A stretch of 64,000 bases of DNA from Dendrobates tinctorius (taxonomy: Eukaryota), in NCBI RefSeq assembly GCF_039654945.1, contig NW_027362050.1, forward strand, positions 1,984,001 through 2,048,000, given 5' to 3'. The notes beneath the pieces are model-generated. The model had not been told where the DNA came from, ran no database searches, and saw only the letters and a program-made list of their open reading frames with translations. Positions within the stretch are counted from its first letter, which is position 1. Every line of letters begins with the position of its first letter. This document shows positions 4,710 through 34,315 of the stretch, piece by piece. The translations under genes were made by a program, and so were the position numbers.

Positions 4710-5465
4710 ACAATTCAAAACAATAGAACACAACACAGCTCACAGCACAACACAACAAACACAGCTCATAACACACCATACAGCACAACAAACAACACAA
4801 AACAACAAACACAGCTCACAGCACAACAAACAACACAAAACAAAAAACACAGCTCATAACACACCACACAACATACAGCACAACAAACAACACAAAACAA
4901 CAAACATAGCTCACAACACAACATACAGCACAACAAACACAACATGTAACAGAACACAGCACAGTACAACACACATCACATAACAAACAGCACAACACAT
5001 GACAGAACACAATACACAGAGAACACACAAAGCACAACACAACAAAACACAATACATGACAAACAGCACAACAAACAACACAGCATAAAACAACAAACGC
5101 AACATATAACAGAATACAGCACAGTACAACACACATGTAACATACACAACACACTTCACATGACAGAACACAATACACAAAGAACACACAAACACAGCAC
5201 AACAAAACACAATACATGACATATAACAGAACACGCCATATGACATAACACAGTATACAGCACTACACACAGCACTACATACAGCACAACAGAATACACA
5301 GTCCAACAACAGAGCACAACGCACAACATTCAGCACTACCCACAACACACCATACAACACGCACAGCACTACTTACAGCACAAGAAAACGCACAACAGAA
5401 CACAATACACAACAAACCACACGGCATGAAGAACAATCCAATATACAACATTCAACACAACAACA
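4710..5465. repeat. AC-rich low-complexity/degenerate tandem repeat
   Basis: Reiterated cacaacaaacaacacaaaac / acagcacaac motifs; produces spurious Cys/Val ORFs. Confidence 0.9.
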
Positions 5466-6404
5466 CTAATAAAAGCTGCCGTGTGGGAGCATCCGTCATC
5501 TTCTCTAAAAAACCTTCCATTATCCAAATTCATTATTCTCATTACAGTGTACAAATACAGATCCACATTAATGTCCTTATCTTATAGTGCCTAAACACAG
5601 GAGAGACTGTCACACAGGACAGGGGATATAATGTGGCTTTCTTCCCTGGAGTCCGATGTCTTTTTATCTTGGGGGGACGGTCAGGTGACAATGCACGTTT
5701 TATATTATACCTCAGTCCATTCCATCATTTCTGTAACTAACATGTGTATTCAAGGAGACAGCACCCCGGGCTCTGTATGTATGGAGCAAGTCCCACTGGA
5801 TATGAATTTTATTTCCTGCCCCAACCCAGGGCAACTTCCAACGTTAACCCCGTGTTCCACACTTCTACCTATAGATTGCCTTAGTGGAACATGTAACAAG
5901 TCACCTAACATTAAAGCCATAGTACAGGACATTCAACACGTGTTGCGCTAATCCGGAGTCCTCTCAATATCACCTCTACGTATCTTATTTTCTGACTCAA
6001 TATTCATGTATTCATACTGAGCAAATACATATCCAAAGCCAAGATATCCTATATTAATACCGCACGTCACAGCGGCACCGAATCTGTAAATGGTGAGCAT
6101 GCCCTCAGTCTCTGTCACTGACTTGAAATACCAAATCTCTTTTTTTTTCATCTGGTTTCCATTTTTCCTGTCCAGTTTATATGTTAATTGCACATTTCCT
6201 TCCTCTTTATAATAGACGACGAAAGGGGTAAATTGCATGTTCCCGTTGCCTGTTCCTTCTCCCCTACAAGTCATCCCATATTATACTGTATTGATGTCAT
6301 ATTAAGCAGTTTTTCTATCATAGCTCCAGAATACATAAATGATATACTTGCAGAAATTTATATGTAGGAAGCTTTCAGTTTTACCAATAAAATCAAGGAT
6401 GTAG

Positions 6405-9120
6405 CAGTATCATGGGTGAATTTAGGGAACGGTATTGTATTGGAGGGGTGGGGTTTTAGGCTATGGTAGTGTATCATGGGTGAATTTAGGGTACGGTATT
6501 GTATTGGAGGAATGGGGTTTTAGGCTATGGTAGTGTATCGCGGGTGAATTTAGGGTACGGTAGTGTATCATGGGTGAATTTAGGGTACGGTATTGTATTG
6601 GAGGGATGGGGTTTTAGGCTATGGTAGTGTATCATGGGTGAATTTAGGGTACAATATTGTATTGGAGGGATGGAGTTTTACGCTATGGTAGTGTATCGTG
6701 GGTGAATTTAGGGGTACGGTATTGTATTGGAGGGATGGGGTTTTACGCTATGGTAGTGTATCATGGGTGAATTTAGGGTATGGTATTGTATCATGGAAAG
6801 GAGGGATTTCGGGTACGGTAGTGTATTGTGGGTGAATTTAGGGTACGGTATTGTATTGGAGGGATGGGGTTTTAGGCTATGGTAGTGTATCATGGGTGAA
6901 TTTAGGGCACGGTATTGTATTGGAGGGATGGGGTTTTACGCTATGGTAGTGTATCATGGGTGAATTTAGGGTACGGTATTGTATTGGAGGGATGGGGTTT
7001 TACGCTATGGTAGTGTATCATGGGTGAATTTAGGGTACGGTATTGTATTGGAGGGATGGGGTTTTACGCTATGGTAGTGTATCATGGGTGAATTTAGTGT
7101 ACGGTATTGTATTGGAGGGATGGGGTTTTACGCTATGGTAGTGTATCATGGGTGAATTTAAGGTACGGTATTGTATTGGAGGGATGGGGTTTTAGGCTAT
7201 GGTAGTGTATCGTGGGTGAATTTAGGGTATGGTATTGTATCATGGAAAGGAGGGATTTAGGGTATGGCAGTGTATTGTTGGTGAATTTAGTGTACGGTAT
7301 TGTATTGGAGGGATGGGGTTTTAGGCTATGGTAGTGTATCATGGGTGAATTTAGGGTACGGTATTGTATTGGAGGGATGGGGTTTTACGCTATGGTAGTG
7401 TATCATGGGTGAATTTAAGGTACGGTATTGTATTGGAGGGATGGGGTTTTAGGCTATGGTAGTGTATCGTGGGTGAATTTAGGGTATGGTATTGTATCAT
7501 GGAAAGGAGGGATTTAGGGTATGGCAGTGTATTGTTGGTGAATTTAGTGTACGGTATTGTATTGGAGGGATGGGGTTTTAGGCTATGGTAGTGTATCATG
7601 GGTGAATTTAGGGTACGGTAGTGTATTGGAGGGATGGGGTTTTACGCTATGGTAGTGTATCATGGGTGAATTTAGGGTACGGTATTGTATTGGAGGGATG
7701 GGGTTTTACGCTATGGTAGTGTATCATGGGTGAATTTAGGGTACGGTATTGTATTGGATGGATGGGGTTTTACGCTATGGTAGTGTATCGTGGGTGAATT
7801 TAGGGTATGGTATTGTATCATGGAAAGGACGGATTTAGGGTACGGTAGTGTATTGTGGGTGAATTTAGTGTACGGTATTGTATTGGAGGGATGGGGTTTT
7901 AGGCTATGGTAGTGTATCGTGGGTGAATTTAGGGTATGGTATTGTATCATGGAAAGGAGGGATTTAGGGTATGGCAGTGTATTGTTGGTGAATTTAGTGT
8001 ACGGTATTGTATTGGAGGGATGGGGTTTTAGGCTATGGTAGTGTATCATGGGTGAATTTAGGGTACGGTAGTGTATTGGAGGGATGGGGTTTTACGCTAT
8101 GGTAGTGTATCATGGGTGAATTTAGGGTACGGTATTGTATTGGAGGGATGGGGTTTTACGCTATGGTAGTGTATCACGGGTGAATTTAGGGTACGGTATT
8201 GTATTGGATGGATGGGGTTTTACGCTATGGTAGTGTATCGTGGGTGAATTTAGGGTATGGTATTGTATCATGGAAAGGACGGATTTAGGGTACGGTAGTG
8301 TATTGTGGGTGAATTTAGTGTACGGTATTGTATTGGAGGGATGGGGTTTTAGGCTATGGTAGTGTATCATGGGTGAATTTAGGGTACGGTATTGTATTGG
8401 AGGGATGGGGTTTTAGGCTATGGTAGTGTATCGTGGGTGAATTTAGGGTACGGTATTGTATTGGAGGGATGGGGTTTTAGGCTATGGTAGTGTATCGTGG
8501 GTGAATTTAGGGTGCGGAATTGTATTGGAGGAATGGGGTTTTACGCTATGGTAGTGTATCGTGGGTGAATTTAGGGTACGGTATTGTATTGGAGAGATGG
8601 GTTTTTAGGCTATGGTAGTGTATCATGGGTGAATTTAGAGTACGGTATTGTATTGAGGATGTGTATTTAGGCTATGGTAGTGTATTGTGGACGAAATTAG
8701 GGCACGGTATTGTATTGGGAGATAAGGATTTAGAGTATCGTAGTGTATTGTGGGAAGGAAGGGTTTAGGGTATTGTAGCATATTGTGGGTTACTTTTGGT
8801 TACAGTATTGTATCGTGGAGGAGGAATGGTATGGTAGTGTATCTGGGTAGAGAAATTTAGGGTACATTAGTTTATAGCAGGTGAATTTAGGGTACAGTGG
8901 AGCATCATGGGATTTAGGATACAGTGGTATATCGTAGGATTATTTAGGGAAGCATAATGTATCATGGGGGAATTTATGGTATGGTGCGGTATAGTGGGGG
9001 GACTTTAGGGTATAATGTATCGTGGGGGGATTTAGGGTTCAGTAGCATATTGAGATGGGATTTAAAGTACAGTACACTATCATGGGTGGATTTAGGGTAC
9101 AGCAGTGTATCGGGGGGGGG
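6405..9120. repeat. Minisatellite, about 64-bp unit (30+34 bp subunits) with higher-order structure, decaying after about 8720
   Basis: Unit ggtagtgtatcatgggtgaatttagggtac ggtattgtattggagggatggggttttacgctat. Matching ORFs recur at offsets of 257 and 450 bp. Confidence 0.95.
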
Positions 9121-10447
9121 GGGGATTAAGAGAACAGTTGCGTAATTTCAGAGGCCGAAATTAATTTAATGGTTTAAATATTTCTGTACAAATTACGTAA
9201 ACATTGGCTCAAGTTTTTGAAATAAGCAGATCCTTCTTTCCAGTTCTGGACAGCCAGTATAAATCCCATTTCCCACATATGTCTCCCGGCCGATAACAGA
9301 ATACAGAATTTGTTACACCGGTCTGTTCAGATATTTAATCATGCTCCTATGAACTTGGCCTGAAGCAGATGAAAACTAAGGACATCTCCAACAGATGTTG
9401 GAATTACATGGAGATGAAGGAGCCTCAAGACATCCTGGCTTTGTGTTGCTGTAGATTCAGCTTCTCATCCCCTTACGCAAAAATATTTAAAAAACTCTGC
9501 AGAAATATAAGAAAATTGCACAAGTTACTGTACATACGTGTAAAAACTGGACACTAAGGAATCTGAAGCATTTGGGGTTCGCCACCAGAAGGTCTCATAG
9601 AACGGAAAATAAATAGAAGATTGATCTAGTGACACGTTCCGCATGGGGGAAGATGAAAGCAGGTGACCATAACAAATGTGCCGGCTTGGCTGGGTGGTCC
9701 GAGGAAGGGACAGCTGTCACTCTATAAAATCCTGCATTACATTCCTAGGGGTAAAGAAGAGCTTAAAGCCATGATAATCTGTTATCTACATTAGGAGGAG
9801 CAGAGAGGCCAAAACACTGGACTGACAAAAAAAAAAGACAACAAGAAGCCAGTGGGACACATCACCTCTGTCATTGTCACCCAGAGCCGTCCCATCTGCC
9901 GCTCACACTTTCCTAGGAAGGGGTCACCCTGACATCCACAACACAGGAGGTAATCACTCATTTTATGCTTAGTAGTCTGTAACAAGGCGATCTAAGTAAA
10001 AGGTTCTTAAAAAAAATAAAATAAAAATCAGCCATTGTTTTGATTTTTGTTCTTAAACTTCATGAGCCACAGTTCTGGCTTATTCCACAAAAACAACTGG
10101 GGATAGACGGTGACTTTTGCACGGCCAAAGACCCTACTATGCCACTGCTGGATCGCAACAGAGAGCGAGTTTTGTCGCATTGTGAGGCTTAAGGTACTGC
10201 ATCCATGAGTAGGAAACTGCAAAAAATCCATCTGGTTCCAACATTTTGTGACTTGCTTGTCTTTCAAAGTACCCTGCGGGGTCCATTGCAACTTGATTTA
10301 CCCGCATTACACAGCGGCACAAAAGTAATATTTGGCCGAGCCACACAGAGCTGAAGTCTGGAGAATATTATGGCAATATTAATTGAATGATGAATTGTAC
10401 AGGAGTGTCTTGATCTAGTGATGAGGTCTGTGCACCGCTATACAAGT

Positions 10448-15946: not shown

Positions 15947-16052
15947 CTCTTATGTTGGTCGAGAAGGTCTTTATCTGTTATCAGAATTTTCAGTTCTTTC
16001 AGATCTTGTAGAAACTCTTTATCCAAATCCATGTCCATGTCATCTGCTACAT
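15947..16052 (-). CDS. FIBP: FIBP coding exon 6
   Basis: (D)[34 protein letters not shown](S); ctgcag| ... |gtgaga; 106 nt. Confidence 0.93.
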
Positions 16053-16326
16053 CTGCAGGAAACAGTCTTGGAAGTAAGAACTGCCACGTGAATGAGGCCT
16101 TGTCCAATTGTAGTGGATACTATATTTTTTTCCTCCCCTATAAGTCCATTCTCCTCCTCATTGCTGAAAGGATGAATGGACGTCATCTTCCTGACTAATA
16201 GAGGACGGTCCCACCTGCAGGACTCTTCTCTGACATCCAAATGGCATATACAGGCAGGGCTTGTCCTCTCTGAGATAAGCGCATTAAAATTGACATTCTT
16301 CCCACTCATGTGCCCGGTTTACTCAC

Positions 16327-16460
16327 CCATTGCTCCTAAAGTCCAGTTCTGGATAAGATGCTCTGCACATGTTGCAAAATCCTCAAACGTCAAGTACTGG
16401 AGCTTTCTCTTGCCCGTTTCAAAGCGACTGTTTGCAAAAAAAACTATTGCAGCGTAATCT
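16327..16460 (-). CDS. FIBP: FIBP coding exon 5
   Basis: (R)[44 protein letters not shown]; tttag| ... |gtgagt; 134 nt. Confidence 0.95.
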
Positions 16461-17963
16461 CTAAAATGCAAACACAGAATATTTGTTTACAAAATATGAA
16501 ATAATCTCTCTTTTTTTTTTTATTTGGACCAAAGTCGGTATAAAAAAAAAAAAAAAAAAAGGGGGAATGCACAAGATTAGGAAAACATGTCTGCAGTTCC
16601 CAGATTGTACGGGGAATTTCAGGTGTTCATATTTATTTTTTTGCTGTATTTTTATAATTTTCATAGATCAGACATTTACAGATGTGACAATAGCAAATTA
16701 CTACTTTTTTATTTTATTTGGACTGGAAAAAGGAGCGGAGTGGATGGGGTAAAACGTTTCATATATATTAAATATATGTAAAAAAAAAATAAATAAATTA
16801 GGTTAGGCTTCATTTATATTTTTTTTTGCCTCCCTAGACAACTTTAACCTGCGATTATCTGATCACTTAGGTTATTTTCGCACGTTGCATTTTTGCTGCA
16901 TATTACAGTATCAGCAAAGTCTGAGATTTCAGAAGCCTCATGCACACACATTGTTTTTTTTTCCTGACTGATTTGGAAAACTGCAGCCTGTCACTTCTCT
17001 CAGCGTTTTGTATGCGTATTTGCACCAATTTCTTAATCGCCTCATTGGGGGACACAGAATACCATGGGTGTATGCTGCTGCTGCTGCTAGGAGGCTGACA
17101 CTATGCAAAACAAGAAAATTAGCTCCTCCCTGGCAGTATACACCCACCGACAGGCACCAAGTACCTCAGTTTGTGCTTAGTGTCTGTAGGAGGCGGACCG
17201 GGATCTCCCCAGATCCGCGTTTAACTTCCTTTTTTCCTTTTCAGGGTTTTGTTGTGTGTATTAATGTTTTCCATTTATTTTTCAAATTCAGCATCGGGAA
17301 ACCGGGTGTAAGTTCATCCTGCTTTCCCATATCAGGCGGCTGATCGAGCAGTGTGGTACTGCCCACATCGCAACTCTCAGGACCGCAGGCAGGACCTTTC
17401 CCCTATCACCCTCGGGTGCTAGGGCTGATGACAGGTGGCGTTCTAGCCGAGTCCCCTCCTCACCCCTCTCCCGGGACAGAGCTGAGAGGAAGACGGCGGT
17501 CACCAGCGGTGACGTTTCCCTTCCTAACAAGAGATTGGCGCCGTCTTCTGCACCATGCGGACATGGTGCGGGTACAGAGGATTCTCTCTCCCAGCGGCCT
17601 GCTCTCTACTCGTGGGCCCCTGTGGTCATCCTCTTCAGGGACATCAGGTAAGCTGTATGAATGTCCCCGCCAGCCCCGCATTCAAGCATGGACCAAATCT
17701 GAATCCCTGCAGCGTCCATAGGCGCCTCTAGTAGTCCCCCCCCCCGCATTCATTCCACTGGAAGCTATCATGGTCGGCGCATCGGGTACATCACCTCTGC
17801 CCGTTTGAATTTCCCGCCCCTTTTGCCTCAGACGCACGCCTCTCTCTCTCCATCGCTTCACTGGGGGGGGGGGGTTCAGCGGTGGTCCCGGTGTCTTTAT
17901 TAGCTCTGCGGCCTCGCGGGCCCCGGGTGCGTCGCCGGTTATTGGACTTGGGTAGGAGACGCG

Positions 17964-19704
17964 GTGTTCACTTCCTTTTTTAGCCCATCACAGGGCTGCT
18001 TTCTCCTTGGCGCCGTCAGGCTTTTCCTCCTAACCGAGCCTCCTCGGGCCTTCATCCAAACACGCAGCGCTGCCGCTAAGCCCCGCCCACCACTATCGGT
18101 AACCTGGCGTTCGGCAGATATCGCTCTCTCCCTTCTATGGATCTCTGCTTGGGGGACACAGCGGCGTCCTGCTGCACATCTGAACCTCGGTAGGCCCTGC
18201 TATTTTCCTGAGGCCACTATTAGCTCCCTGTGGCAGTTCCTTATCAGATTCTTGCGCACATACTGCCTCAGAGTACACATATGCCCAACCCTGCAAGGGC
18301 GCTCTATTCCAGACCCACCGCTATTCACTACGCCTGTGCGCGCTGTAAAAAGAAGTGGGCATCAGGTCAGTCGTCTCCCTTCTGTCCGTCCTGCAGCCCT
18401 TATATTATGTCTGCCCCTCAGGAGCACTCCGAACCCAGTAATGAGAGCACTCCCCCTCTCCCAGAGTGGGCCCGTTGCTATGTCTCAGTCGGTCTCTGAC
18501 CTGACTAAAGTTTCTCAGTCCCTGGTCCAGGTCTTAGAACGTTTACCTCAGCTATCTATTGCCACCTGTGCGCCGACCGCCTCTCACGGTGAGTCGCCCG
18601 CACCTGACCACGACCTTCAGACGGATAGATCGAGTAGGAGTTCAAGGAAGCGGGCTCTGGCTGGCTCTTCGTCCAGCTCACAAGGTCCTTCCGCTTCTCC
18701 CAGGCTACGTTCCTCGTCTCCTTCATCAGAAGACGACCTTAGGTCAGACGATGATTCCCAATCGGGATCTGACTCAGAGGCAGACAACATGTCTAAAACA
18801 CGAGACATGGTTGATAGTCTCATATCGGCTATTTTCCAAACCCTCAAAATAAAACAGGAAAAAGCACCGCTTCAGGAATGCTCTGTTTCCTTTAAGCGAG
18901 CGAATCCTCCCTCTCGAACACGTTTTTCAGGTCGCAAGTACTTGGATGTGCTATATCCTTTCGATGAGGATCTACTCACAAAATGGACTAAAGCTCCCGA
19001 AGTAGATCCACCAGTTTCCCGTCTCTCCTCTAAGACGGTTCTATCCCTTCTGGACGGGGCTTCACTTAAAGATCCAACAAACAGACAAATAGAATCACTG
19101 GCGAAATCAATTTTTGAGGCATCTGGCACCTCTCTGTCCTATTTTCGCCTCCGCCTAGGTGGCGAAAGTCATTTCAGCTTGGGCCAAAATTCTTCGCAAG
19201 GGTATCTTAGCTGCAGTCCCACAGGATGAGCTGGCAGATCTAGCAGACCAAATTAATCATGCGGGTAAATATCTTTTGGCCGCCTCCTTGGACGCGGCCG
19301 GGTACGTCGCAAGAGCTAACAGCAACATAGTAGCCATACGCCGCATCCTTTGGTTGAAGTCATGTAGTGTGGACACTACTTCTAAGAAGTCGCTCACCAA
19401 TCTGGCATTTCACGGCTCTAGGCTCTTTGGCACCAAGCTGGATCAGATTATTTCGGATGCCACTGGTGGTAAAAGTACCTCCCTTCCTCAGTCCCGGCCT
19501 AGAAGGTTTTTCAACAGGAAAGCTTCTCGGCCGTTTAGGTCCTTTAGCCCCTTCTCTTCCACAGAAGGTTCATCCCAGCAGGACCGGCCCTCCGCTTCCA
19601 GAGACTGGAGAAAACCATCATATAAACCCGCTCCCTGCTGGAGATCAAGAGGTCAGCCCTCAAGGTCTTTAGGCTCCCAGTCCGGCAGATTTTCATCCAA
19701 GTGA
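17964..19704 (+). pseudogene. DIRS copy 1 gag-like ORF (frameshifted near 19140)
   Basis: ORFs 17964-19229 and 19159-19704 align with the copy-2 gag (MSQSVSDLTKVSQSLVQVLERLP; WTKAPEVDPPVSRLS; DQIISDATGGKSTSLPQ). Confidence 0.85.
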
Positions 19705-21600
19705 CGGGTCACCCCCACCTGGAAATTCTTCCAGGGTGGGAGGCAGACTTTCCTCTTTCAGGGACGCATGGCTATCCGTGGTCGACGACGCTTGGGTCAG
19801 GGAAATTATCGTATCCGGTTACAAGATCGAATTTTCCTCCCCCCCAAACAGATGCTTCTTTCTGTCTCATCCCCCAAGACAGCGGTCCCAGATTCCAGGG
19901 TTCCTTCAGGCCGTCTCCTCCCTTCTTTCCGCCGGAGTTATCGTTCCCGTTCCTTCAAACGAACGGTTTTCAGGTTTTTACTCGAATCTCTTCCTAGTCC
20001 CGAAAAAAGACGGCTCCCTTGGACCTCAAGTTGCTCAATTGCCACGTGAGAATCCTCCACTTCAAAATGGAGTCCCTGCGCTCAGTGATAGCCTCAATGG
20101 AACCCGGAGAGTTCCTTTGCTCTGTGGACATTCAGGATGCCTATCTTCACATTCCTGTTTGTTTGCAACATCAAAGATTCCTCCGCTTCGCGATTCAGGA
20201 AAATCACTATCAGTTCACGGCCCTTCCTTTCGGCCTAGCCTTCGCTCCCCGGGTTTTCACGAAGGTGATGGTGACAGTCATGGCCATCCTTCGCTCCAGG
20301 GGGATCCTCATCATCCCTTATCTGGACGATCTCTTGATCAAGGGCTCGTCTCGCCAAGACTGCATGCAAAGTCTTCAGATAACCCTGGATACTCTCGACC
20401 GCCTTGGATGGATAGTCAACAAAGAGAAGTCCATCCTGCTCCCTACTCAGCGTCTGACCTTTTTGGGCATGGAATTCGACACGAATCTAGCCCGGGTGTT
20501 TCTACCGAGGGACAAAGTTTCAGCCCTTTGCAAGGGAATCCGATCTCTGAAACGCTCAAGGCCCATTCCCCTTTGGTCCTGCATGAGGACCCTGGGGAAG
20601 ATGATAGCCTCTATGGAAGCAGTGCCTTACGCACAATTTCACACTCGCCCTCTCCAGCTGTCCCTCCTTTCAACCTGGGACAAGACCTCTGCATCTCTGG
20701 ATCGCCCCATTCTCCTGCCTCTCAGAGTAAGGCAGTCCCTGACTTGGTGGACATTACCGATGTCAGTTCTCCAGGGAAGGTCCTTTCTACCGCCTCAGTG
20801 GCAAGTCATCACCACCGATGCTAGTCTCCTAGGATGGGGGGCGGTTTTCCATCGGAAAACGGCCCAAGGGCGCTGGGACGCCCAGGAGTCTCTGCTTCCC
20901 ATCAACCTTCTGGAGATCAGAGAGATCTTCCTTGCTCTACTCTGCTGGCTGCCTCTTCTCGTGGGCAAACCAGTCCGCATTCAATCGGACAACGCCACGG
21001 CCGTGGCGTACATAAACCATCAGGGCGGTACTCACAGCAGGCAAGTAATGACAGAAGTGGCGAAGATTCTGCGTTGGGCAGAGCATTATGTTCCGGCGAT
21101 CTCCGCCGTCCACATTCCAGGGGGTGGAAAATTGGGCAGCCGATTTTCTAAGTCGCCAGGGCCTAGCGTCAGGCGAGTGGTCCCTTCACCCCACAGTCTT
21201 CACTCAGATTTGCCAGTGTTGGGGCACCCCGGACGTCGACCTCATGGCATCGCGGATGAATCACAAAGTTCCTTGCTTCGTAGCCAGGTCCAGGGACCCT
21301 CTAGCCGTCGGTTGTGACGCCCTAGTAATTCCGTGGTCTCAGTTCCAATTCCCTTACCTGTTCCTGCCCCTTGCCTTGATCCCAAGGGTGGTCAAGAAGA
21401 TAAAATCAGAGGGCATCCCAGTAATTCTAGTGGCTCCAGACTGGCCAAGACAACCTTGGTACGCGGAACTGGTGAACATGCTCGCGGACGTCCCCTGGAG
21501 GCTTCCAGATCGTCCAGATCTTCTCTCTCAAGGCCCTCTTTTCCACCAGAATTCTCAGTCTCTAAGTTTAACGGCATGGCCGTTGAGGCCGCGATTCTGA
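19701..21600 (+). pseudogene. DIRS copy 1 reverse transcriptase/RNase H plus methyltransferase-like domain (frameshifts near 20019 and 21121)
   Basis: GFYSNLFLVPKKDG, DIQDAYLH, ALPFGL, PYLDD (RT); TTDASLLGWG, INLLE, SDNATAVAYINHQGG (RNase H); DVDLMASRMNHK...PYLFLP (MT-like). Confidence 0.92.
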
Positions 21601-22687
21601 GAGACTCAGGTTTTTCCAGCCAGGTTATCCAGACCATGATTAGAGCTAGGAAACCAGCCTCCTCTCGCATTTACCTTCGGTACAGGAAGGCTTTTTTCTG
21701 TTGGTGCGATGACAATAATGTTTTTCCTTTGTCTTTCTCCATTCCATCCATTCTTGGCTTCCTCCAGTCCGGCTTAGATGCGGGCCTGTCCCTCAGTACC
21801 CTCAAGGGCCAGGTATCAGCTCTGTCGATCGTTTTCCAGAGGGATCTGGCCCCCTTGCCGCAATTTAAAACCTTTCCATCGGCTCTGTCGATCCTTTTCA
21901 AGAGGGATCTGGCCCCCTTGCCGCAAGTTAAAACCTTTCTCCAGGGAGTCGCCCACGTGGCGCCTTCTCATCATTCTCCGATAGATCCGTGGGACCTCAA
22001 TCTCGTTCTTGGCGCTCTTTAAAAGGCGCCGTTCGAGCCTATTCAGGACATCCCTCTGTCCCTTCTCTCATGGAAGGTAACCTTTCTGATCGCCATTACA
22101 TCCATTAGGAGAGTTTCTGAGCTGGCGGCTCTGTCCTGTCGTTCCCCGTACCTAATCCTCCATCAGGATAAGGTCGTTCTCAGGCCAGTTCCTTCCTTCC
22201 TTCCAAAGGCGGTATCCCCTTTCCACATTAATGAGGATATTGTACTTCCTTCTTTTTGTCCTGCGCCGGTCCACCGTCTGGAAAAGTCGCTCCACAACCT
22301 GGATGTAGTGAGAGCCTTGCAGGTCTACCTTGCCAGGACTGCTTCGTTTCGTCAATCCGACTCCCTGCTTGTCATCTCTGAAGGTCGCCGAAAAGGGCTT
22401 CCGGCATCCAAATCCACAATTGCTCGCTGGATTCGTTCTACCATTCTGGAAGCTTACCGCCTTCAGGAGAAACTGCCCCCCCGGGAGTGAGAGCCCACTC
22501 CACCCGGGCTGTAGGGGCTTCTTGGGCGGTTCAACACCAGGCTTCGGCTTTACAAGTTTGCAGAGCCGCGATCTGGTCGTCTTTGCACACGTTTGCGAGG
22601 TTCTACAGGGTTCATACCCAGGCCTCGTCTGATGCAGCTCTTGGTAGGAAGGTGCTGCAGGCGGCGGTAGCTCGTCGGCCGACCTAA
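21576..22687 (+). pseudogene. DIRS copy 1 tyrosine recombinase (premature stop 22020-22022, frameshift near 22480)
   Basis: STLKGQVSALS, PWDLNLVL, RRVSELAAL, RAHSTRAVGASWA...WSSLHTFARFY: the R...HxxR...W...Y signature. Confidence 0.9.
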
Positions 22688-23967
22688 GCCCTTCCTTCTC
22701 GTTCCTTATTGCTGTTCCCACCCTCGGGACTGCTTTGGAACGTCCCATGGTAATCTGTGTCCCCCAATGAGGCGATAAAGAAAGAGGGATTTTTGGGTTC
22801 TTACTGTAAAATCTCTTTCTTGGAGCCTTCATTGGGGGGACACAGCACCCTCCGTGTTTAAGTTGTACCGTGTTGGGTCTTCGAGTCCCTTGTTGGGTTG
22901 GTACATATTTTGAGAGTTTTGGTTGCTTTTCCTACTGCTTTCTCACCAACTGAAGTACTTGGTGCCTGTCGGTGGGTGTATACTGCTGGGGAGGAGCTAA
23001 TTTTCTTGTTTTGCATAGTGTCAGCCTACTAGCAGCAGCAGCATACACTCATAGTAATCTGTGTCCCCCAATGAAGGCTCCAAGAAAGAGATTTTACGGC
23101 AAGAACCCAAAAATCCTTCTTTTTCACCCATAAGAAACAATGGGTAAGTGCAAAAACACAGCAAAAAAATGCAGCAATCATTTTTTGCTGAAAAAACCTA
23201 AGGAAGTTAAATTAGGCTTTTTTGGTGGGCGTTAAACTTTATCCACAGACAGTAAAAAAGCAGCACAAAAACGCAGGAAAAACTCAGCAAAACCTGCTTT
23301 TCATAAGCCGCTTCTTTACTGCCAAGAGAGCAGGTTTGGCCTGCAGAAAAAAATGCAGCAAAAATGCAATATGTGAACATAGCTTAATACTACAGTATAT
23401 ACTGTAGCACATTAGTATGGTAGTATATGGTAAAACATGATGCTACTCACTCATGGAAGCCCAAAGATGGTGGGAAAGGTTGCCCACAGCTGTCAAGGTA
23501 ACCCATCGGCTCACTGTGGGTGCTCAAATCGATTGCAACCATTCAGAAAGAAATTGACAGCAGCAATCAGAGCTAGAAGCTGGTGCAAGCTGTGTAGCTC
23601 CTGTCCTGTTTGGAGTGAGTTTAGCCTTCAAGTCACTGTTCGGTCACATTCAGACATTTGTTCCAATGCATGGAATGGCCGGTGACTCTCCCCACCCCTG
23701 CACGACGGCCTCATAGAAATACATGAAGTTGTCACGCTTGGTCAGGAGACCGCCGGCTAGTCCTCACACTTAAGTCTGATCTCTGACGAATTTACAAATG
23801 TCTGAATTCGCCCTTCACTGCAGACCAGCCGACAGGCTTCGTTTGCAGGACACAAAGCTATTTTGGACTTTTTTTTCATAGGAATGAACTAGAATTTTAC
23901 AGTCACTGAGCAATGGAATATATCACTTCTTATTAACGCACAGAACATGTAAGGTTGGATGACCTAC

Positions 23968-24068
23968 CTGGCGAGTTTGTCTGACAAAAGGAAATTCTGC
24001 TGAATATTTTCCACGAGAGCACCTCTCATTTCTTCTACTACCTTAAAGACTCGCTTAAAATTGTCAAA
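23968..24068 (-). CDS. FIBP: FIBP coding exon 4
   Basis: [33 protein letters not shown](R); ttcag| ... |gtaggt; 101 nt. Confidence 0.96.
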
Positions 24069-24175
24069 CTGAAAAGAAAATTTATTTATATATATACACA
24101 AACACACACTCAAAACAATACATGTAAATGAGAGGATGCAAGGTGACAGGACTGGGAAATAGAGTAGTCAGATAC

Positions 24176-24302
24176 CTGTCTCCTGCAGCTCTTCAGGGTC
24201 ACCCCAGTCTTCGCACTTATATCATCCAGATCTTTCTTGGTTCCTTTAGAGAGTTTCTTTCCAAGAACTTCCCGCACAAAAGCTTCATCAAAAGCATAGT
24301 AC
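24176..24302 (-). CDS. FIBP: FIBP coding exon 3
   Basis: (R)[42 protein letters not shown]; ctag| ... |gtatct; 127 nt. Confidence 0.96.
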
Positions 24303-24507
24303 CTAGAGCAAGACAGGCCTTAAAGGGATTGTCTGGACAGGTGATATTGATGATGCATCCCCAGCTTAGGTCACTAGTGTCCGAACAATGGGGGTCTGAC
24401 ACCCGGCACCCCACCGATCAGGGGGCTGTTAGCCCCAGAAGGATGTAAGTGTTCAGTATGTAGTGTCTGATGCCAGGAAGTACAAATAATCTTTTGTATA
24501 ATAAAAT

Positions 24508-24702
24508 AGCAGCTGATCCGCAGTGCAGACAGCAGCTGATTCGCAGTGCAGACAGCAGCTGATCCGCAGTGCAGACAGCAGCTGATGATCCGCAGTACAG
24601 ACAGCAGCTGATGATCCGCAGTACAGACAGCAGCTGATGATCCGCAGTACAGACAGCAGCTGATGATCCGCAGTACAGACAGCAGCTGATGATCCGCAGT
24701 AC
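24508..24702. repeat. 23/26-bp tandem repeat (left half)
   Basis: Unit gatgatccgcagtacagacagcagct. Confidence 0.92.
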
Positions 24703-24862
24703 AAAATAGAAAAAACACGGCACTCAGTGTGGAGGGAGGTGCACAAGTCGGGTATCCAGCCAACTAACAATGTAGTACAAAAACTTGGCACTCAAAAGAA
24801 AAATTGATTTGACAGTTCCTTTATTGTAAAAGGCATCCAGTTAAATATACTTCTTTTACTTC

Positions 24863-24902
24863 TTTAAACGTTTTCGGTCATAAAATTGACCTTCATCAGA
24901 AA
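24863..24902 (-). ncRNA. Minimal hammerhead-ribozyme motif (FIBP-sense)
   Basis: TTT CTGATGA A GGTCA ATTTTA TGACC GAAA ACGTTT AAA: 5-bp stem II and palindromic stem III. Confidence 0.75.
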
Positions 24903-25442
24903 CAGAATTTTTTCACAGTTGGTTTTAACTGAGAGGAACTGTAATGGACGCTGTCTCTCATACCAGCAGCACATGCATCCAGCCACAGACCAAGCGCTAT
25001 TCCTCTGCACCCTCAGTGCTTCTCCTGAACAGCGCGTTCACTCTCCCTGTGATACACTTGCCTCCCTGGGCAGGACAGGCCATTTGGAGAATCACAGCAC
25101 CCAGTTGTGGACATTCATGCCTGTCACAAACAATACAGGATAGTTTCCTGAATATATTACAGTACAAATTTCTGGACACCCACACCAATTATTGGATCTA
25201 CCGGTCCCTGTATAACCCAAGGTGTCAAACCCGTTGGTCTGGTGATTTCCTACATGAATGGTGTCCTTTCACCCTCAGTAGCTGCTGCTTCCCAGATGTC
25301 TGTTTCTCCACATTATTAATGAATATACCCAGTACTGAATAGTGCCTACTTATGACAGCGGTTCTTTAATAATAATAATAATAATATATGGAATTTTCCA
25401 TTACAGTTCCTCTCAGTTAAAACCAACTGTGAAAAAATTCTG

Positions 25443-25484
25443 TTTCTGATGAAGGTCAATTGTATGACCGAAAACGTTTAAAGA
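25443..25484 (+). ncRNA. Minimal hammerhead-ribozyme motif (inverted copy)
   Basis: TTT CTGATGA A GGTCA ATTGTA TGACC GAAA ACGTTT AAAG. Confidence 0.75.
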
Positions 25485-25575
25485 AGTAAAAGAAGTATAT
25501 TTAACTGAATGCTTTTTACAATAAAGGAACTGTCAAATCAATTTTTCTTTTGAGTGCCAAGTTTTTGTACTACAT

Positions 25576-25830
25576 TGATCCGCAGTACAGACAGCAGCTG
25601 ATGATCCGCAGTACAGACAGCAGCTGATGATCCGCAGTACAGACAGCAGCTGATGATCCGCAGTACAGACAGCAGCTGATGATCCACGGTACAGACAGCA
25701 GCAGATCCGCGGTACAGACAACAGCAGCAGATCCGCAGTACAAACAGCAGCTGTTCCACAGTACAGACAGCAGCTGATCCACAGTACAGACAGCAGCTGA
25801 TCCACAGTACAGACAGCAGCTGATCCACAG
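25576..25830. repeat. 23/26-bp tandem repeat (right half)
   Basis: Same unit and orientation as 24508-24702. Confidence 0.92.
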
Positions 25831-26037
25831 TGCTCGGCCGTAGCTAATGCACATTTAAAGGTGTTGAGCAGCTCAGCTCTATTCAATGTTTACTTTCAAT
25901 AAGTTAATAGCAGCTGATTGTTGGGGGTGCTGGAAAAACATGACCCACATTACATGTGTGTGATAACTTGCTGACCCCCGCTCTCTATATATATGCCCAT
26001 GTTGCATGCATATGCAGGATGATGTGAGTAGTAGTAC

Positions 26038-26236
26038 CTCTCAATCAGCATACTCTGCTTGTAAGGTGGGATCTGAAAAAGTAACTGCTGCACCAGTTTA
26101 GGTGGGTAATGGAGAAGCCTTTCGATCATCTGAAATGTTCTGTAATGGTCCATGGTGTCACTCTCCAGGACGTCAGGGCCAGCTCCGGTCTGGTCTAATA
26201 TGCCGCTCTTTAGACGCATATTCACCGCATCGCTCA
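26038..26236 (-). CDS. FIBP: FIBP coding exon 2
   Basis: (V)[65 protein letters not shown](R); ttgcag| ... |gtacta; 199 nt. Confidence 0.96.
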
Positions 26237-27426
26237 CTGCAAGAAAAAAACAACGAAATGAATAAATCCGGGACAACCCTTATACGAATGCAGCGTGTTT
26301 TTACGCTTGGACTGATGGTCAGGGTGTGAGAAAAGAAAAAGAGGGATTTTTTGGTACCGTAAAATCTCTTTCTTGGAGCCTTCATTGGGGGACACAGATT
26401 ACCATGCGTGTATGCTGCTGCTGCTGCTAGGAGGCTGACACTATGCAAAATAAGAAAATTAGCTCCTCCCCGGCAGTATACACCCACCGACAGGCACCAA
26501 GTACCTCAGTTGGTGAAAAAAGCAGTAGGAGAAGCAACAATAACCCTTAAAATATGTACCAACCCAACAAGGGGCTCGTAGGCCCAACATGGTACAACTG
26601 AAAAAGGGAGGGCGCTGTGTCCCCCAATGAAGGCTCCAAGAAAGAGATTTTACGGTAAGTACCCAAAAATCCCTCTTTCTTTATCGCTTCGTTGGGGGAC
26701 ACAGATTACCATGGGACGTCCCAAAGCAGTCCCAAGGGTGGGAAAAGGCCTTAGGGAACGTGAAGAAAGGACTTAGGTCGGCAGATGTGCTACCGCCGCC
26801 TGCAGAACCTTCCTACCCAAGCCTGCATCGGACGAGGCCTGGGTATGAACCTTGTAGAACCTCGCAAAAGTGTGTAAGGACGACCAGTTCGCGGCCTTGC
26901 AAAGCTGTAATGCCGAAGCCTGGTGTCGGACAGCCCAAGAAGCCCCTACCGCACGGGTGGAGTGGGCTCACACTCCCGGAGGGGGACGTTTTTCCTGGAG
27001 GCGGTAAGCTTCCAGTATAGTAGAGCGAATCCAGCGAGCGATTGTGGATTTGGATGCCGGGAGCCCTTTCCGGTGACCTTCAGAGATGACAAGCAGGGAA
27101 TCGGATTGACGAAGAGAAGCGGTCCTGGCAAGATAGACACGCAAGGCCCTCACCACATCCAGTTTGTGGAGCGACTTTTCCAGTGGGTGAACAGGCGAAG
27201 GACAAAAGGAGGGTAGGACAATGTCCTCATTGATGTGGAAAGAAGATACCACTTTGGGAAGGAAGGAGGGGATGGGCCTGAAAACAACCTTATCCTGATG
27301 GCGGATTAGGTAAGGGGAATGACAGGATAAAGCCGCCAGCTCAAAAACTCTCCTAATGGATGTAATGGCAATTAGAAAAGTTACCTTCCATGAGAGAAGG
27401 GAAAGAGGAATGTCCTGAATAGGCTC

Positions 27427-27836
27427 CTTATGGATATAATGTTATTCTCGGGCTTACTGTGCGCTGCTTGACCAGGATAAAATCACCACAACATGAGAAA
27501 TTTGACCATTTAATTCCCAACGCGTTTCAAAGTGTGAACCACTTCTTCTTCAGTGGTTCACACTTTGAAACGCGTTGGGAATTAAATGGTCAAATTTCTC
27601 ATGTTGTGGTGATTTTATCCTGGTCAAGCAGCGCACAGTAAGCCTGAGAATAACATTATATCCATAAGGATTCGTATTGGAGGTCACGCAGTGGACCTTC
27701 GGGCGTGCAGCAGGCTGACGGCGGGTTTATATGCTTATACCTCTCCTGGAAAGGGTGAGTAGACTTTTGTTATATCTATTCAATTGTCCACCAGATAAGA
27801 CCCTATTGCGCTTTTCTGTTTCCTAGTTTCAGTATA
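27427..27836. mobile_element. Penelope-like insertion with fold-back palindrome and 12-bp target-site duplication
   Basis: TSD ctgaataggctc at 27415-27426 and 27837-27848. Arms 27425-27543 and 27552-27670 with one mismatch seen; hammerhead motif at the apex. Confidence 0.88.
27516..27556 (-). ncRNA. Minimal hammerhead-ribozyme motif (FIBP-sense)
   Basis: CCA CTGAAGA A GAAGTG GTTCA CACTTT GAAA CGCG TT GGG. Confidence 0.7.
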
Positions 27837-28258
27837 CTGAATAGGCTCGAAAGGCGCACTCTGAAGAGCGCTGAGAACGAGATTAAGATCCCACGGATCT
27901 ATCGGAGAATGATGAGGAGGGGCCACGTGGGCGACTCCCTGGAGAAAGGTCTTAACTTGTGGCAAGGGAGCCAGATCCCTCTGGAAAAGAATCGACAGAG
28001 CCGAGACTTGGCCTTTGAGAGTACTGAGGGACAGGCCTGTATCTAGGCCGGATTGAAGGAAGTCAAGTATGGATGGAATGGAGAACGACATTGGAAAAAC
28101 ATCGCTGTCGTCGCACCAACGGAAAAAAGCCTTCCAGTACCTGTGGTAAATGCGGGAGGCGGATGGTTTTCTAGCCCTGATCATGGTCTGAATGACCTGG
28201 TTGGAAAAACCCGATTCTCTCAGAATCGCGGCCTCAGCCATGCCGTTAAACTCAGAGA

Positions 28259-30127
28259 CTAACTCTGGTGGTAAAGGGGGCCTTGTGAGAGAAGATCTGG
28301 ACGGTCTGGAAGCCTCCAGGGGACGTCCGCGAGCATGTTCACCAGCTCCGCATACCAAGGTCGCCTTTGCCAGTCTGGAGCTACAAGAATTACTGGGATG
28401 CCTTCTGTTTTTATCTTCTTGACCACCCTTGAGATCAAGGCAAGGGGAGGAAACAAGTAAGGGAGTCGGAACTGGGACCACGGGATTACCAGGGCGTCGC
28501 AACCGACGGCCAGAGGGTCCCTGGACCTGGCCACAAAGCGGGGAACTTTGTGGTTCATCCGAGACGCCATGAGGTCGACATCCGGAGTGCCCCAAAGCTG
28601 GCATATCTGACTGAAGATCGTGGGGTGGAGAGACCATTCACCTGATGCTAGGCCCTGGCGACTTAGGAAGTCGGCTGCCCAATTTTCCACCCCTGGAATG
28701 TGAACGGCGGAGATTGCCGGAACGTAACACTCTGCCCAACGCAGTATCTTTGCTACTTCTGCCATTACTTGTTTGCTGCTAGTACCGCCCTGGTGGTTTA
28801 TGTGCGCCACAGCCGTGGCGTTGTCTGATTGGATGCGGACTGGTTTGCCCGCGAGGAGAGGCTGCCAGTTGAGGAGAGCAAGGAAGATCGCTCTGATTTC
28901 CAGAAGGTTGATGGGGAGAAGAGTCTCTTGGGCGTTCCAGCGCCCTTGGGCAGTTTTCCGATGGAAAACTGCTCCCCACCCAAGAAGACTGGCATCGGTG
29001 GTGATGACGTGCCACTGGAGAGGGAGAAAGGACCTCCCCTGCAGGACTGAGGAAGGTATTGTCCACCAGGTCAGGGATTGCCTCACACTGAGAGGTAGGA
29101 GAATGGGGAGGTCCAGAGAGACCGAAGTCTTGTCCCAGGCTGACAGGAGGAACAGCTGAAGAGGACGAGTGTGGAATTGGGCAAAGGGAACAGCTTCCAT
29201 GGAGGCTATCATCTTCCCCAGGACCCTCATGCAGGACCGAAGGGGGATGGGGACTGTCCGCTTCAGGGATCGGATTCCCTTGCAGAGAGCTGAAAATTTG
29301 TCCCTCGGAAGGAACACCCGGGCCAGATTCGTGTCGAACTCCATGCCCAGGAATGTCAGTCGCTGGGTTGGGAGCAGGGTGGACTTCTCTCTGTTGATTA
29401 TCCAGCCGAGACGGATGAGAGTATCCAGAGTGATCTGAAGACTCTGAAGGCAGTCTCGGCATGACGAGCCCTTGATCAACAGATGGTCCAGGTAAGGGAT
29501 TATGAGGATCCCCCTGGAGCGAAGGATGGCCATGACGGCTGCCATGACCTTTGTAAAGACCTGGGTAGCCTAGGCTAGGCCAAAGGGAAGGGCTGTGAAT
29601 TGGTAGTGATCTTCCTGAATCGCAAAGCGAAGAAATCTCTGATTTCGCAAACAAACAGGGATGTGAAGGTAGGCATCCTGTATGTCTACAGAGCAGTGGA
29701 ACTCCCCAGGCTCCATTGAGGCGATCACCAAGCGAAAAGACTCCATCTTGAAGTGGAGGATCCGCACGTGGCGATTGAGTAGTTTGAGGTCCAAGATTGG
29801 GAGAAGCGAGCCGTCTTTTTTCGGGACTACGAAGAGATTCGAGTAGAACCCTGAAAACCGTTCGTTTGGAGACACAGGAACAATTACTCCAGCGGATTGG
29901 AGGGAAGAAACGGCCTGGAGGAACCCTGGGGTCTGGGACGGCTGTTTTGGTGGACGAGACTGAAAGAAGCATCTCTTTGGAAGGGAAGAAAATTCGATTT
30001 TGTAGCCGGATGTGATGATTTCCCTGACCCATGCGTCGTCGACAATGGACAGCCACGCGCCCCTGAAACAAGAAAGCCTGCCTCCCACCCACCCTGGAAG
30101 AACTTCCAGGTGGGGGTGACCCGTCAC
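28259..30127 (-). pseudogene. DIRS copy 2 RT/RNase H/MT-like (stop at 29570-29572; catalytic YLDD changed to YLDH)
   Basis: ORFs 29570-30127 and 28259-29545; DIQDAYLH, ALPFGL, PYLDH, TTDAS, DVDLMASRMN, PYLFPP. Confidence 0.92.
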
Positions 30128-31467
30128 TTGGAGGAAAATCTACCGGAGCGGGACCTTGAGGGCTTGGAGGGTCGGCCCTTTGGTCTCCAGTGGGGTGCGG
30201 GTTTATACGATGGTTTTGTCCGTTGCCCGGAGGTAGAGGGCCGGTCCTGCTGGGAGGAATTTTCCGAGGAAGGAAAGGGGCGAAAGGACCTAAACTGACA
30301 AGGAGCTTTCCTGTTGAAAAAACGTCTAGGCCGAGACTGAGGAAGGGAGGTACTTTTACCTCCAGTGGCATCAGAAATTATCTGGTCCAACCTGGCGCCA
30401 AAGAGCTTAGAACCCTGAAAGGCTAGGTTGGTAAGCGACTTCTTAGAGGTGGTGTCCGCACTCCATGAATACGGCGTATGGCCACTATGTTGCTGTTAGC
30501 TCTTGCTGAACACCGGGCTGCATCCAAAGAGGCGGCCAAGAGGTATTTACCAGCATGATTAATTTTGGTCAGCCAGCTCCGCTAGCTCGTCTTGAGGAGC
30601 TGAGGCTAAGACGCCCTTGCGAAGAATTTTTGCCCATGCTGAAATGGCTTTCGCCACCTAGGCGGAGGCGAAACTGGGACAGAGAGAGGCGCCAGTTGCC
30701 TCAAAAATCGATTTGGCCAGAGATTTGATCTGCCTGTCTGTTGAATCTTTAAGGGATGCCCCGTCTGGAAGAGAGAGAACCGTCTTCGAGGAAAGACGGG
30801 AAACTGGCGGATCCACCTCGAGAGCTTTGACCCATTTTGTGAGAAGGTCCGCACTAAAAGGATATAGCACGTCTAGTTGCCTGCGTCCTGAGAATCGCTT
30901 TTCAGGATGTTCCCAGTGTTTGGTTAGCGTAGCCTCGAACTCCTTGTGATTAGGGACGGTTCGGGAGGGAGGTCTCGCTCGTTTAAATGGGACAGGGCTT
31001 TCTTGAAGAGGCGTCTTGTCCTCTTTAATTTTGAGGGTTTGGATAATAGCTGCTACGAGACTATCCACGTCTACGACTATACGCGTCTTGTCCTCTTTAA
31101 TTTTGAGGGTTTGGATAATAGCTGCTACGAGACTATCCACCATGTCCTGAGTTTTGGACATGTGGTCCGTGTCTGAGTCAGACCCCGATTGGGAATCTAC
31201 GTTTGACACAAGGTCGTCGTCCGAGGAAGGGGACGAGGAAAGTAGCCTGGGAGATGCGGATCCTTGTGAGCTGGAAGAAGAGCCAGACAGAGCCTGCTTC
31301 CTAGAACTCCTACCCGGTCTATCCCTCTGGAGGTCGCGGTCAGGTGTAGGCGACTCACCGTGAGAGGCGGTCAGAGCACAGGTGGCTGTAGATAGCTGAG
31401 GTAATCGTTCTAAGACCTGGACCAGGGACTGAGACACTTTAGTCAGGTCAGAGACCGACTGTGACAT
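30124..31467 (-). pseudogene. DIRS copy 2 gag-like ORF (disrupted; internal tandem duplication)
   Basis: Homologous to the copy-1 gag; DSLVAAIIQTLKIKEDKT occurs twice. Confidence 0.85.
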
Positions 31468-33598
31468 TGCAACGGTCCTCTCTGGGGGAGGGGGAGTGCT
31501 CTCATCCCGGGGGCTCGGTGTGCTCCTGTGGGGCAGACATAGTGGAAGGACTGCAGGACGGGCAGAAAGGAGACGACTGACCTGACACCCACTTCTTTTT
31601 ACAGCGCGCGCAGGCGTAGTGAGTAGCGGTGGGTCTAGGATAGGGAGCCCTTGCAGGGTTGGGCATATGTGAAGACTACGGTATTATAGCAGAACGTATC
31701 TGAGAGGGTACTGCTGGGAGGGAGAGAGTACTGCCGAGGGAAGCTAATTAGAGCCTCAGGAATATAAGAAGAGCCTACCGTGTCCAGCTCCGCTAATCTG
31801 ATGCGCAGCAGACAGATGTGTCCCCCAAGCTGAGATCCGCCCTTAGCGGTGGGCGGTGCTTAGCGGCCGTGCTGCGCGATTGGCTGTAGACTGCGGGGGG
31901 GGGGGCGCGGTTAAGGAGGAGAACTGAGAGCTACGAAGATAAAGTAGCTCTGTGATGGAAAGAGCGCGCGCAAAGCGGGGGCGTGAACAGACGGGGCCTC
32001 CCTATGCGAAAGTGAAACTAAAAACGCTATGCCGGTTTCCACCCCCGAAGTCTGTCATACACAACTGATGCACTCAGTACCCGTGACGCCGCAGAAATAA
32101 GGCAGGTATGAGAATTGGGGACCAGCTGCCTGCGGGCTTCAATGCCGAACACCCGGCTGTGGGCGGAAAGCTGAATTTCAAAAGGAGAGTAGGCATTGTC
32201 AGCTATCAGCGGTGCCGACCTCGATGACTTCTATGTGGGGCGAGCGCGGGACTATTCAGACTGCTTACCTGACGCCCACATGCTTCCCTGAAGAGGATGA
32301 CCGCAGGGGCCCACGTTGAGGGGAGGCCGCTGGGAGTGAAGATCCTCTGTACCCGCACTGTGTCCGAGCAGTGCAGAAGACGGCGTCAACCCCTTGCTAG
32401 AAGGGGGGAGGTCACCGCCGGTGACCACCGTCTTCCTCTCAGCCCTCTCCCGGGAGAGGGGTGAGGAGGGGAATTGGCTAGGACCAGCCACCTGTCATCA
32501 GCCCGTAGCACCCAAAGGTGATAGGGATAAGGTCCTGCCTGCGGGCCTGAGAGTTGCGATGTGGATGACACCACATTGCTCGCTCAGCTGCCTGATATGG
32601 GAAGGCAGGGTGAGAATTTACACCGTTTCCTGACGCCGTATCTGGAAAATAAATGGAAAAGGTTAATACACACAACTAAAAACCTAAAAAGGAAAAAAAG
32701 AATGGTTAACTGCGGATCTGGCGAGAGCCCGGTCCGCCTCCTACAGACAATAAGCACTAACTGGGGTACTTGGTGCCTGTCGGTGGGTGTATACTGCCGG
32801 GGAGGAGCTAATTTTCTTGTTTTGCATAGTGTCAGCCTACTAGCAGCAGAAGTATACACCCATGGTAATCTGTGTCCCCCAATGAAGCAATAAAGAAAAA
32901 CAAAAAAAAAAGCAAACACTTCAGGCTTCCATTTTTGAGATCTGACTCGCTCATTAAATTCAAAGTGTTAAAGGAAAAAAAAATGGATGCAATGTTTTTT
33001 TTAATGGATCCATTGCAATTATTGACATAGGAAAGTGCGTTTTACCTTGTACTATTTTTTTTTAATTAATAAAGTGTAAAAATGGATGTCATATCATGGT
33101 ATATGGAGAACAACACAGGTGAATTTTTTTTTTTTTCTGGATGATACGCTACTCTCAACCCAGCCTGATTTATATAGGGTCAAGGCTACATACCTTATAC
33201 GCTGCACTACAGCATTTCTCAGACAACTAGCGAACGACTAACTTCAATTTTGCTGCAAACTAGTAATAGCCAAGTCGTAGATATGCCACACACATGTTGC
33301 AGTCGCCTATGAAGTCTATGGTAAAGTGAGTCGCGTTTGACTTGCGACCGGGGACAAGAAATCCAATAGATTTGGAAACATTTGCGACTCGGGTGCTGCA
33401 TGTCAGAATGCAACACCATAGCAAATCAATAGATGTGATATCACAAAGAAAGATGGATTTTTGCGTCACATGTTGCCCTAAGGCTAACCTCATCATATAA
33501 AGAAGATCCAGCCATCAGCCCCTTGTCTCGGCCATTTTTTTTTTCCTGTAAATAAACATGGCTGACAGAGGAAGGAGTTTTTCATGCGGCATTACTAC

Positions 33599-33683
33599 CT
33601 GTATATCCATCCAGCCAGAGCTGATAAACCTCTTCATCAATCAGGGTGGTATTTCCAACAAACACATCCAGTTCATTGGCCAT
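33599..33683 (-). CDS. FIBP: FIBP coding exon 1 (exon 33599-33695 including 12 nt of 5'UTR); acidic FGF intracellular-binding protein
   Basis: ctttacag|GAAACCATCATT ATG... = [28 protein letters not shown](V)|gtagta. The ten exons sum to 1071 nt, an open 356-aa ORF. Confidence 0.96.
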
Positions 33684-34315
33684 AATGATGGTTTCCTGTA
33701 AAGAGAAAACTGTGGATGAGAAATTCAGCTCGTGACTTTAAAATCTGACGCAACAATATGGATCAGTAATAAGATACGTAATACCTCACACAGGACTCCC
33801 CCCAATGCAACAGAAGAGGTGACCTCCGCACCAAATCAGCATGTAGCTCCTGTAGATACGCTGTGAACCAATCTGCACCAGTGACAATATAGTGATGGCT
33901 TGTTATGTATGGAAACATATAACTTAAAGCGATATTTTAGCATAAACAAATTGTCACTGAAACCACAGGATTGGCGCTGTTAGATTGGTGCTGATGTCCC
34001 CACCACTAGGGGTCTTTTCCCCCCTTTCTTACATAGCCATAAGCCCTGGAGTTAAATGGAGTGGCTGGTCTGGTTGCACGTGTTTTGCGGCTACATATAT
34101 GTCTATAAAAATAAAGATAGCCGGGCAAAGGGAAACAAGTAATAGCAAGAACTGTGGGAAGAGGTAGCAGAGGTGGAAGTCAGGAAAGATAAAAGTGAAA
34201 AAAGGAATGAGGCCAAGGTCATTATCTAAAGGGTTATTCCCATTTTCATACACAAATACTGTCGGATAGTGCTGGTAAGTAAATACAAGCTTGTTTGCAA
34301 TTTACGGCTTATTAA

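Follow-up and report, generated by a model that had tools for sequence, protein, structure and literature searches.

What happens to the message of a conserved gene when two copies of one retrotransposon family come to lie in opposite orientations in the introns on either side of its coding exons? The question is raised by a window (the whole stretch of DNA that was analysed) of 64 kb without any N from the frog Dendrobates tinctorius (contig NW_027362050.1, positions 1,984,001 to 2,048,000; all coordinates below count from the first letter of the window), in which exons 2-4 of the FIBP gene are enclosed by two DIRS elements. An earlier note on this DNA had proposed that the FIBP pre-mRNA could fold into a kilobase-scale duplex that loops out exons 2-4, yielding a circular RNA (circRNA) and a frameshifted isoform that skips these exons, and that the pair could also mediate an inversion. 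We find that the inverted structure is real and was accurately described, and that FIBP is spliced linearly as its main product. The arrangement is most likely a neutral accident, from which circular or skipped forms arise as a minor by-product at most.

The anatomy of the pair was established by sequence comparison. In a blastn search, copy 1 (17029-23125) and copy 2 (32898-26335) show colinear reverse-complementary homology that ends exactly at these four borders, and together with the positions of the exons this bears out the claim of two same-family DIRS elements in inverted orientation around FIBP exons 2-4. A repeat search found inverted matches in colinear succession between 17076-23043 and 32852-26416, with complementarity of 81-95%. 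The homology over about 6 kb put forward in the earlier note was upheld by a global MAFFT alignment, which gave an identity of 85.0% over 5,844 aligned pairs; the differences comprise 553 transitions and 325 transversions. Identity between the copies follows a gradient from ~70-77% in the leader and the start of gag to 93% at the 3' end, reaching 88.6% over the inner 1.1 kb (22035-23125 vs 26335-27426), while the longest exact block common to both copies measures 46 nucleotides (nt). The inner terminal repeat arms (22939-23043 vs 26416-26520) are 95% complementary, in agreement with the close reverse complementarity ascribed to the 3' inverted terminal repeats. Since the order gag, reverse transcriptase (RT), RNase H, recombinase places the 3' ends of both copies inward, the description of the pair as tail-to-tail members of one family is correct. 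The homology is far beyond chance; that two insertions face opposite ways is expected in 1 of 2 cases. Both copies are degenerate, non-autonomous relics, as their reading frames are broken in several places each, and no further copy of this DIRS family was found within the window.

Both elements are DIRS1-type retrotransposons and resemble Dictyostelium DIRS-1 and its vertebrate relatives in their termini as well as in their coding order. The two copies end in inverted terminal repeats (91-95% complementary) and not in direct long terminal repeats (LTRs), the internal complementary region of each copy mirrors 40 nt at the left end and 64 nt at the right end of that copy, and no target-site duplication was detected, the flanks of both copies having no direct repeat in common. 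Using Pfam, we identified RVT_1 in copy 1 (20019-21317, E=4e-18) and in copy 2 (28259-29545) RVT_1 together with RT_RNaseH, the latter at E=7.5e-6 and above cut-off, and found no integrase (rve) match anywhere. The gag-like piece of copy 1 (19159-19704, plus strand) matches LAP2alpha in Pfam (PF11560, E=9.5e-9, above cut-off), which fits the proposed origin of this mammalian nuclear-lamina domain from a DIRS gag. The letters of the 3' coding part resemble a tyrosine recombinase: in a language-model search the clusters nearest to the piece 26971-27441 of copy 2 were 'Tyr recombinase' and Phage_integrase (20 of the 30 matches, scores 0.94-0.97), and the letters ...SIRRVSEL..., ...HSTR... and ...FARFYRVH..., read by eye, agree with the pattern R / HxxR / Y. 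Sequence searches of Pfam and PDB returned nothing for the 3' coding part except a weak Phage_int_SAM_4 match (E=0.17). Between RNase H and recombinase lies the stretch 'DVDLMASRMNHKVP...APDW..PWY', which we take to be a putative DIRS methyltransferase-like domain. The order would then be gag, RT, RNase H, methyltransferase-like domain and, by clusters and motifs, tyrosine recombinase, as in DIRS1-type elements. The copies differ from that type in being broken relics, copy 2 with a nested insert of 422 nt. This insert holds a palindrome with 119-nt arms (27425-27543 and 27552-27670, 99% complementary) around an 8-nt loop, and matches no Rfam family at the gathering threshold. As a separate observation, a long stop-free alternative frame overlaps the RT region in both copies (19673-20821, plus strand, 383 codons; 30377-28782, minus strand, 532 codons), even though their main frames are broken. 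Dating the insertions from the divergence of their terminal repeats was considered and rejected because, unlike LTRs, the terminal repeats of DIRS elements are not restored from a single template.

FIBP lies on the minus strand with exons 1-10 in order, exons 6-10 running down to about 11542. Matched to Pfam one by one, exons 2, 3 and 4 all exceed the cut-off for PF05427, at the consecutive profile positions 28-92, 94-135 and 136-168; exons 1 and 5-10 were identified by reading open reading frame (ORF) pieces. Exons 2-4 are bordered by AG/GT, and RNA contigs, in which they occur as spliced blocks, bear them out. Intron 1 measures 7,362 nt, of which copy 2 makes up 6,564 nt (89%), and intron 4 measures 7,507 nt, of which copy 1 makes up 6,097 nt (81%). 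The inner ends of the elements stand 843 nt past the exon-4 donor (23968-23125) and 99 nt before the exon-2 acceptor (26335-26236), close to the approximately 850 and 100 nt given earlier, and the exon-2 polypyrimidine tract and likely branch region fall outside copy 2. The exon sizes on which the predicted circle was based, 199+127+101 = 427 nt, proved exact, and its junction letters CTCGCCAG and TGAGCGAT are indeed the true end of exon 4 and the true start of exon 2. As 427 equals 3x142+1, skipping of exons 2-4 would shift the frame, as had been predicted. We also observed that the right end of copy 2 (26335-26360, minus strand) reads ...TTTTACG/GTACC..., a donor-like sequence ~120 nt before the acceptor of exon 2, whose use is seen in no contig.

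In the pre-mRNA, the pairing on offer lies mostly across the two introns. Inverted matches between intron 1 and intron 4 extend over 5,704 nt, and those inside each intron over about 240 nt, the latter consisting of pairs of 136-138 nt at 91-93% plus pairs of 64 nt and 40 nt between terminal repeat and internal complementary region. For the 186-nt terminal arms, RNAduplex predicts -324 kcal/mol for the inner and -336 kcal/mol for the outer cross pair, against -247 and -253 kcal/mol for the pairs within each element; for the inner 1.1-kb arms it predicts -1,867 kcal/mol, against about -510 for shuffled controls. Judged by these models, a cross-intron duplex is thermodynamically credible. The order of transcription may act in both directions. 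All of intron 1, including both terminal repeats of copy 2, would be made ~3 kb before the first base of the copy 1 arm, so that self-pairing and ordinary splicing of intron 1 would have a head start; in the opposite sense, the exon-4 donor would wait 7.5 kb for the exon-5 acceptor, which would leave a time window for back-splicing.

To see which products are made, we used Logan assembled contigs from four runs, none of them recorded as RNA, under two organism labels (A and B), and compared them with a stretch of at most 6 kb around exons 2-4. All four runs have zero depth over unique intron stretches and thus behave as RNA. In organism A, contigs of 1,202 and 1,312 nt (X1, X19) cover exons 4, 3 and 2 without letter differences; followed on the minus strand, they run at their loose ends into 'AGATTACGCTGCAATAG...' of exon 5 and '...CTGGCTGGATGGATATA' of exon 1. 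The same exon blocks, with one substitution, are present in organism B (X5), which is a close relative, as its contig reads into a slightly different end of exon 1. Intron 2 is seen as a CT..AC joint, i.e. GT..AG on the gene strand, and linear joins of exons 1-2-3-4-5 are the only FIBP joins that the contigs of the four runs show over this stretch. These contigs, in which rare junctions are dropped, contain no back-splice joint, neither one at 23968/26236 nor any other that goes back, and the DIRS arms show no cluster of A>G or T>C changes. The few other letters on the arms and on a repeat insert in intron 2 are of mixed types, as expected from other genomic copies, and were counted neither for nor against editing. 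In the deepest run (X23) the contigs continue without breaks at the exon-2 acceptor and the exon-4 donor, which is weak evidence that alternative junctions at these sites are minor. The summed depth over the DIRS arms is high and reflects the multicopy family rather than the FIBP locus. Apart from this, contigs of all four runs join 26397 to 26708 with 'GA' in between, inside the right terminal repeat and internal complementary region of copy 2; this joint could reflect variation at the level of the family or a rearrangement.

The mechanism invoked in the earlier note, back-splicing promoted by inverted intronic repeats, is well established: reverse-complementary dimers of transposable elements (TEs) in flanking introns, typically young and lineage-specific, are the accepted route to circRNAs (PMC8516420). 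The pair at FIBP is like the inverted Alu and short interspersed element (SINE) pairs of mammals in that same-family copies stand in opposite orientation in flanking introns, here ~85% complementary, near the splice sites and accompanied by competing pairs within the introns. It differs in that its arms are 6-kb DIRS elements of autonomous type with terminal inverted repeats of their own, not 300-nt SINEs, and in that a back-splice product is known for the mammalian pairs, whereas none was observed here in contigs. Closer at hand, the newt Pleurodeles waltl also has a repeat-rich amphibian genome with inverted TE pairs in the introns flanking circRNAs: most of its circRNAs have repeats in the flanking introns, and hAT, LTR and nMITE elements are the commonest inverted pairs (PMC11872487). 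Unlike here, circRNA calls exist for the newt, and none for the FIBP locus; DIRS is not among the TE classes named for the newt, and the word is absent from the text of that paper. In our literature search we found no paper on a FIBP circRNA and none tying DIRS pairs to circRNAs.

How, then, is the locus best explained? In the neutral reading that we favour, one DIRS1-type family would have inserted twice, separately, into a working FIBP gene, in sense in intron 1 and in antisense in intron 4, and both copies would have decayed afterwards. As they are complementary over about 5.7 kb of the pre-mRNA, with inner arms 99 and 843 nt from splice sites, cross-intron pairing and some back-splicing of exons 2-4 are physically possible, in competition with the pairs formed inside each intron by each element's own inverted terminal repeats. 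The main product is nevertheless linear, and we infer that back-splicing is at a low level and that the pair is a neutral accident of a DIRS-rich and repeat-rich genome. Several points weigh against this view. The cross-intron complementarity has ~24 times the length of whatever pairing a single intron offers, and it comes as close to the splice sites as at loci that form circRNAs efficiently. In minigene work, complementarity of as little as 30-40 nt suffices for circularisation. All of the RNA evidence, moreover, comes from contigs. A sizeable circRNA may therefore still be made, given how long the cross-intron complementarity is and how near to the splice sites it comes.

In a rival reading, the duplex forms in earnest and loops out exons 2-4, which would give the 427-nt circRNA in appreciable amounts, a frameshifted isoform that skips from exon 1 to exon 5, ADAR editing and a lower output of FIBP. 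In its favour are the 5.7 kb of cross-intron complementarity, the predicted stability of the inner arms, their distance from the splice sites, the late exon-5 acceptor and the precedents in mammals and the newt. We nonetheless consider it unlikely. The contigs show a linear message across exons 1-5, with neither the back-splice joint nor the editing clusters, and intron 1, complete well before the complementary arm, may already be spliced when that arm appears. In addition, ADAR and RNA helicases oppose circle formation on long duplexes. The strongest version, in which exons 2-4 would give rise to an abundant lineage-specific 427-nt circRNA and the arms to a hyper-edited or diced kilobase double-stranded RNA, so that the DIRS insertions tune the output of a conserved gene, seems to us decidedly improbable. 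The within-intron pairs invite another explanation, namely that each DIRS element folds on its own terminal repeats and internal complementary region during transcription, which would loop the 6-kb element out and bring the linear splice sites together, with no effect across introns and perhaps some benefit for linear splicing. Both terminal repeats of copy 2 are transcribed before any of copy 1, and the exclusively linear contigs would fit; however, the inner-arm cross pair is predicted to be more stable than either within-element pair, and the bodies of the elements can pair only across introns, and we regard this explanation as quite unlikely. As for the claim that homologous recombination between the copies actively inverts the 3.2-kb segment with exons 2-4, and so would disrupt FIBP in certain cells or germ lines, an inverted homology of about 6 kb speaks in its favour, but it turned out to be weak. 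Efficient recombination in vertebrate cells usually needs uninterrupted identity well above 46 nt, and with 15% divergence and no longer exact block such events should be rare. The exon order in the RNA contigs is uninverted, and one contig that joins the two DIRS arms on opposite strands (22637/26744; X5, depth 2) lies wholly in multicopy DIRS sequence and probably comes from another locus or is an assembly artefact. Active inversion at this locus thus appears extremely unlikely.

Table 1. Features of the FIBP locus and of the inverted DIRS pair (positions in the window).
Feature	Position	Strand	Remarks
FIBP exon 1, coding part	33599..33683	-	start codon to donor ACAG/GT (ACAG/GTAG); ORF piece; contig loose ends at 26237/26239 read into exon 1
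FIBP exon 2, 199 nt	26038..26236	-	Pfam FIBP E=1.9e-23; contig pieces
FIBP exon 3, 127 nt	24176..24302	-	Pfam FIBP E=3.8e-16; joint 24296>26032 (cut +6), CT..AC ends = intron 2
FIBP exon 4, 101 nt	23968..24068	-	Pfam FIBP E=1.9e-13; contig pieces
FIBP exon 5	16322..16460	-	start exact, end approximate; ORF piece, acceptor located; contig loose end at 23968 reads in
DIRS copy 1, 6,097 nt	17029..23125	+	antisense to FIBP, in intron 4; degenerate; homology to copy 2 ends here
Copy 1 left inverted terminal repeat	17029..17215	+	17039-17175 vs 22944-23078 91% complementary; core 17076-17175 vs 22944-23043 95%
Copy 1 internal complementary region	22744..22845	+	17029-17068 pairs with 22744-22783; 22781-22845 with 23059-23122
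Copy 1 right (3') inverted terminal repeat, inner arm	22939..23125	+	843 nt downstream of exon-4 donor
DIRS copy 2, 6,564 nt	26335..32898	-	sense to FIBP, in intron 1; degenerate; carries 422-nt foreign insert
Copy 2 right (3') inverted terminal repeat, inner arm	26335..26520	-	99 nt upstream of exon-2 acceptor
Copy 2 internal complementary region	26615..26715	-	26338-26397 pairs with 26615-26678; 26676-26715 with 32859-32898
Copy 2 left inverted terminal repeat	32713..32898	-	26380-26515 vs 32755-32887, 93% complementary
422-nt insert, recombinase region of copy 2	27427..27848	.	largest indel of the global alignment; not in copy 1
Fold-back insert, intron 2	24704..25575	.	181-nt arms 24768-24948 / 25397-25577, 98% inverted; internal to predicted circle precursor

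Other repeats and genes are found in the same window. FIBP intron 2 contains a 26-nt minisatellite (24514-24703 and 25576-25824) that is split by the ~870-nt fold-back insert listed in Table 1. Contigs over this insert carry many substitutions, from which it can be seen to be a multicopy repeat, and an Rfam scan of 16000-34000 at the gathering threshold returned no family, including for the insert. Further away, ~4700-9150 is occupied by long tandem arrays with an extreme GC skew of -0.44 and then +0.59; around 6360-9150 the array has a period of about 64 nt, with 'NPIPPIQYRTLNSPMIHYHS...' repeated on the minus strand, and around 4700-5450 there is a Cys/Val-rich low-complexity frame. Downstream of FIBP, EGF-like exons at 136-530 (minus strand), among them CTDGYEWDAERQHCK, were read from ORF pieces as EFEMP2 / fibulin-4-like; in mammals, EFEMP2 is the neighbour of FIBP.

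If the strongest version of the circRNA reading were true, FIBP would be the first locus at which tyrosine-recombinase retrotransposons drive circRNA formation. Back-splicing driven by this pair would carry the rule linking inverted TEs and circRNAs beyond short SINEs, to amphibian DIRS elements at their full length of 6 kb, and it would provide a natural test of very long, 85%-matched intronic duplexes against pairing within introns and co-transcriptional splicing. At present, the pair is probably an ordinary by-product of a genome rich in repeats. What the locus chiefly shows is that 12.7 kb of inverted retrotransposon sequence, reaching to within 100 nt of a splice acceptor, is tolerated by a conserved and expressed gene, as is to be expected in a DIRS-rich frog genome.

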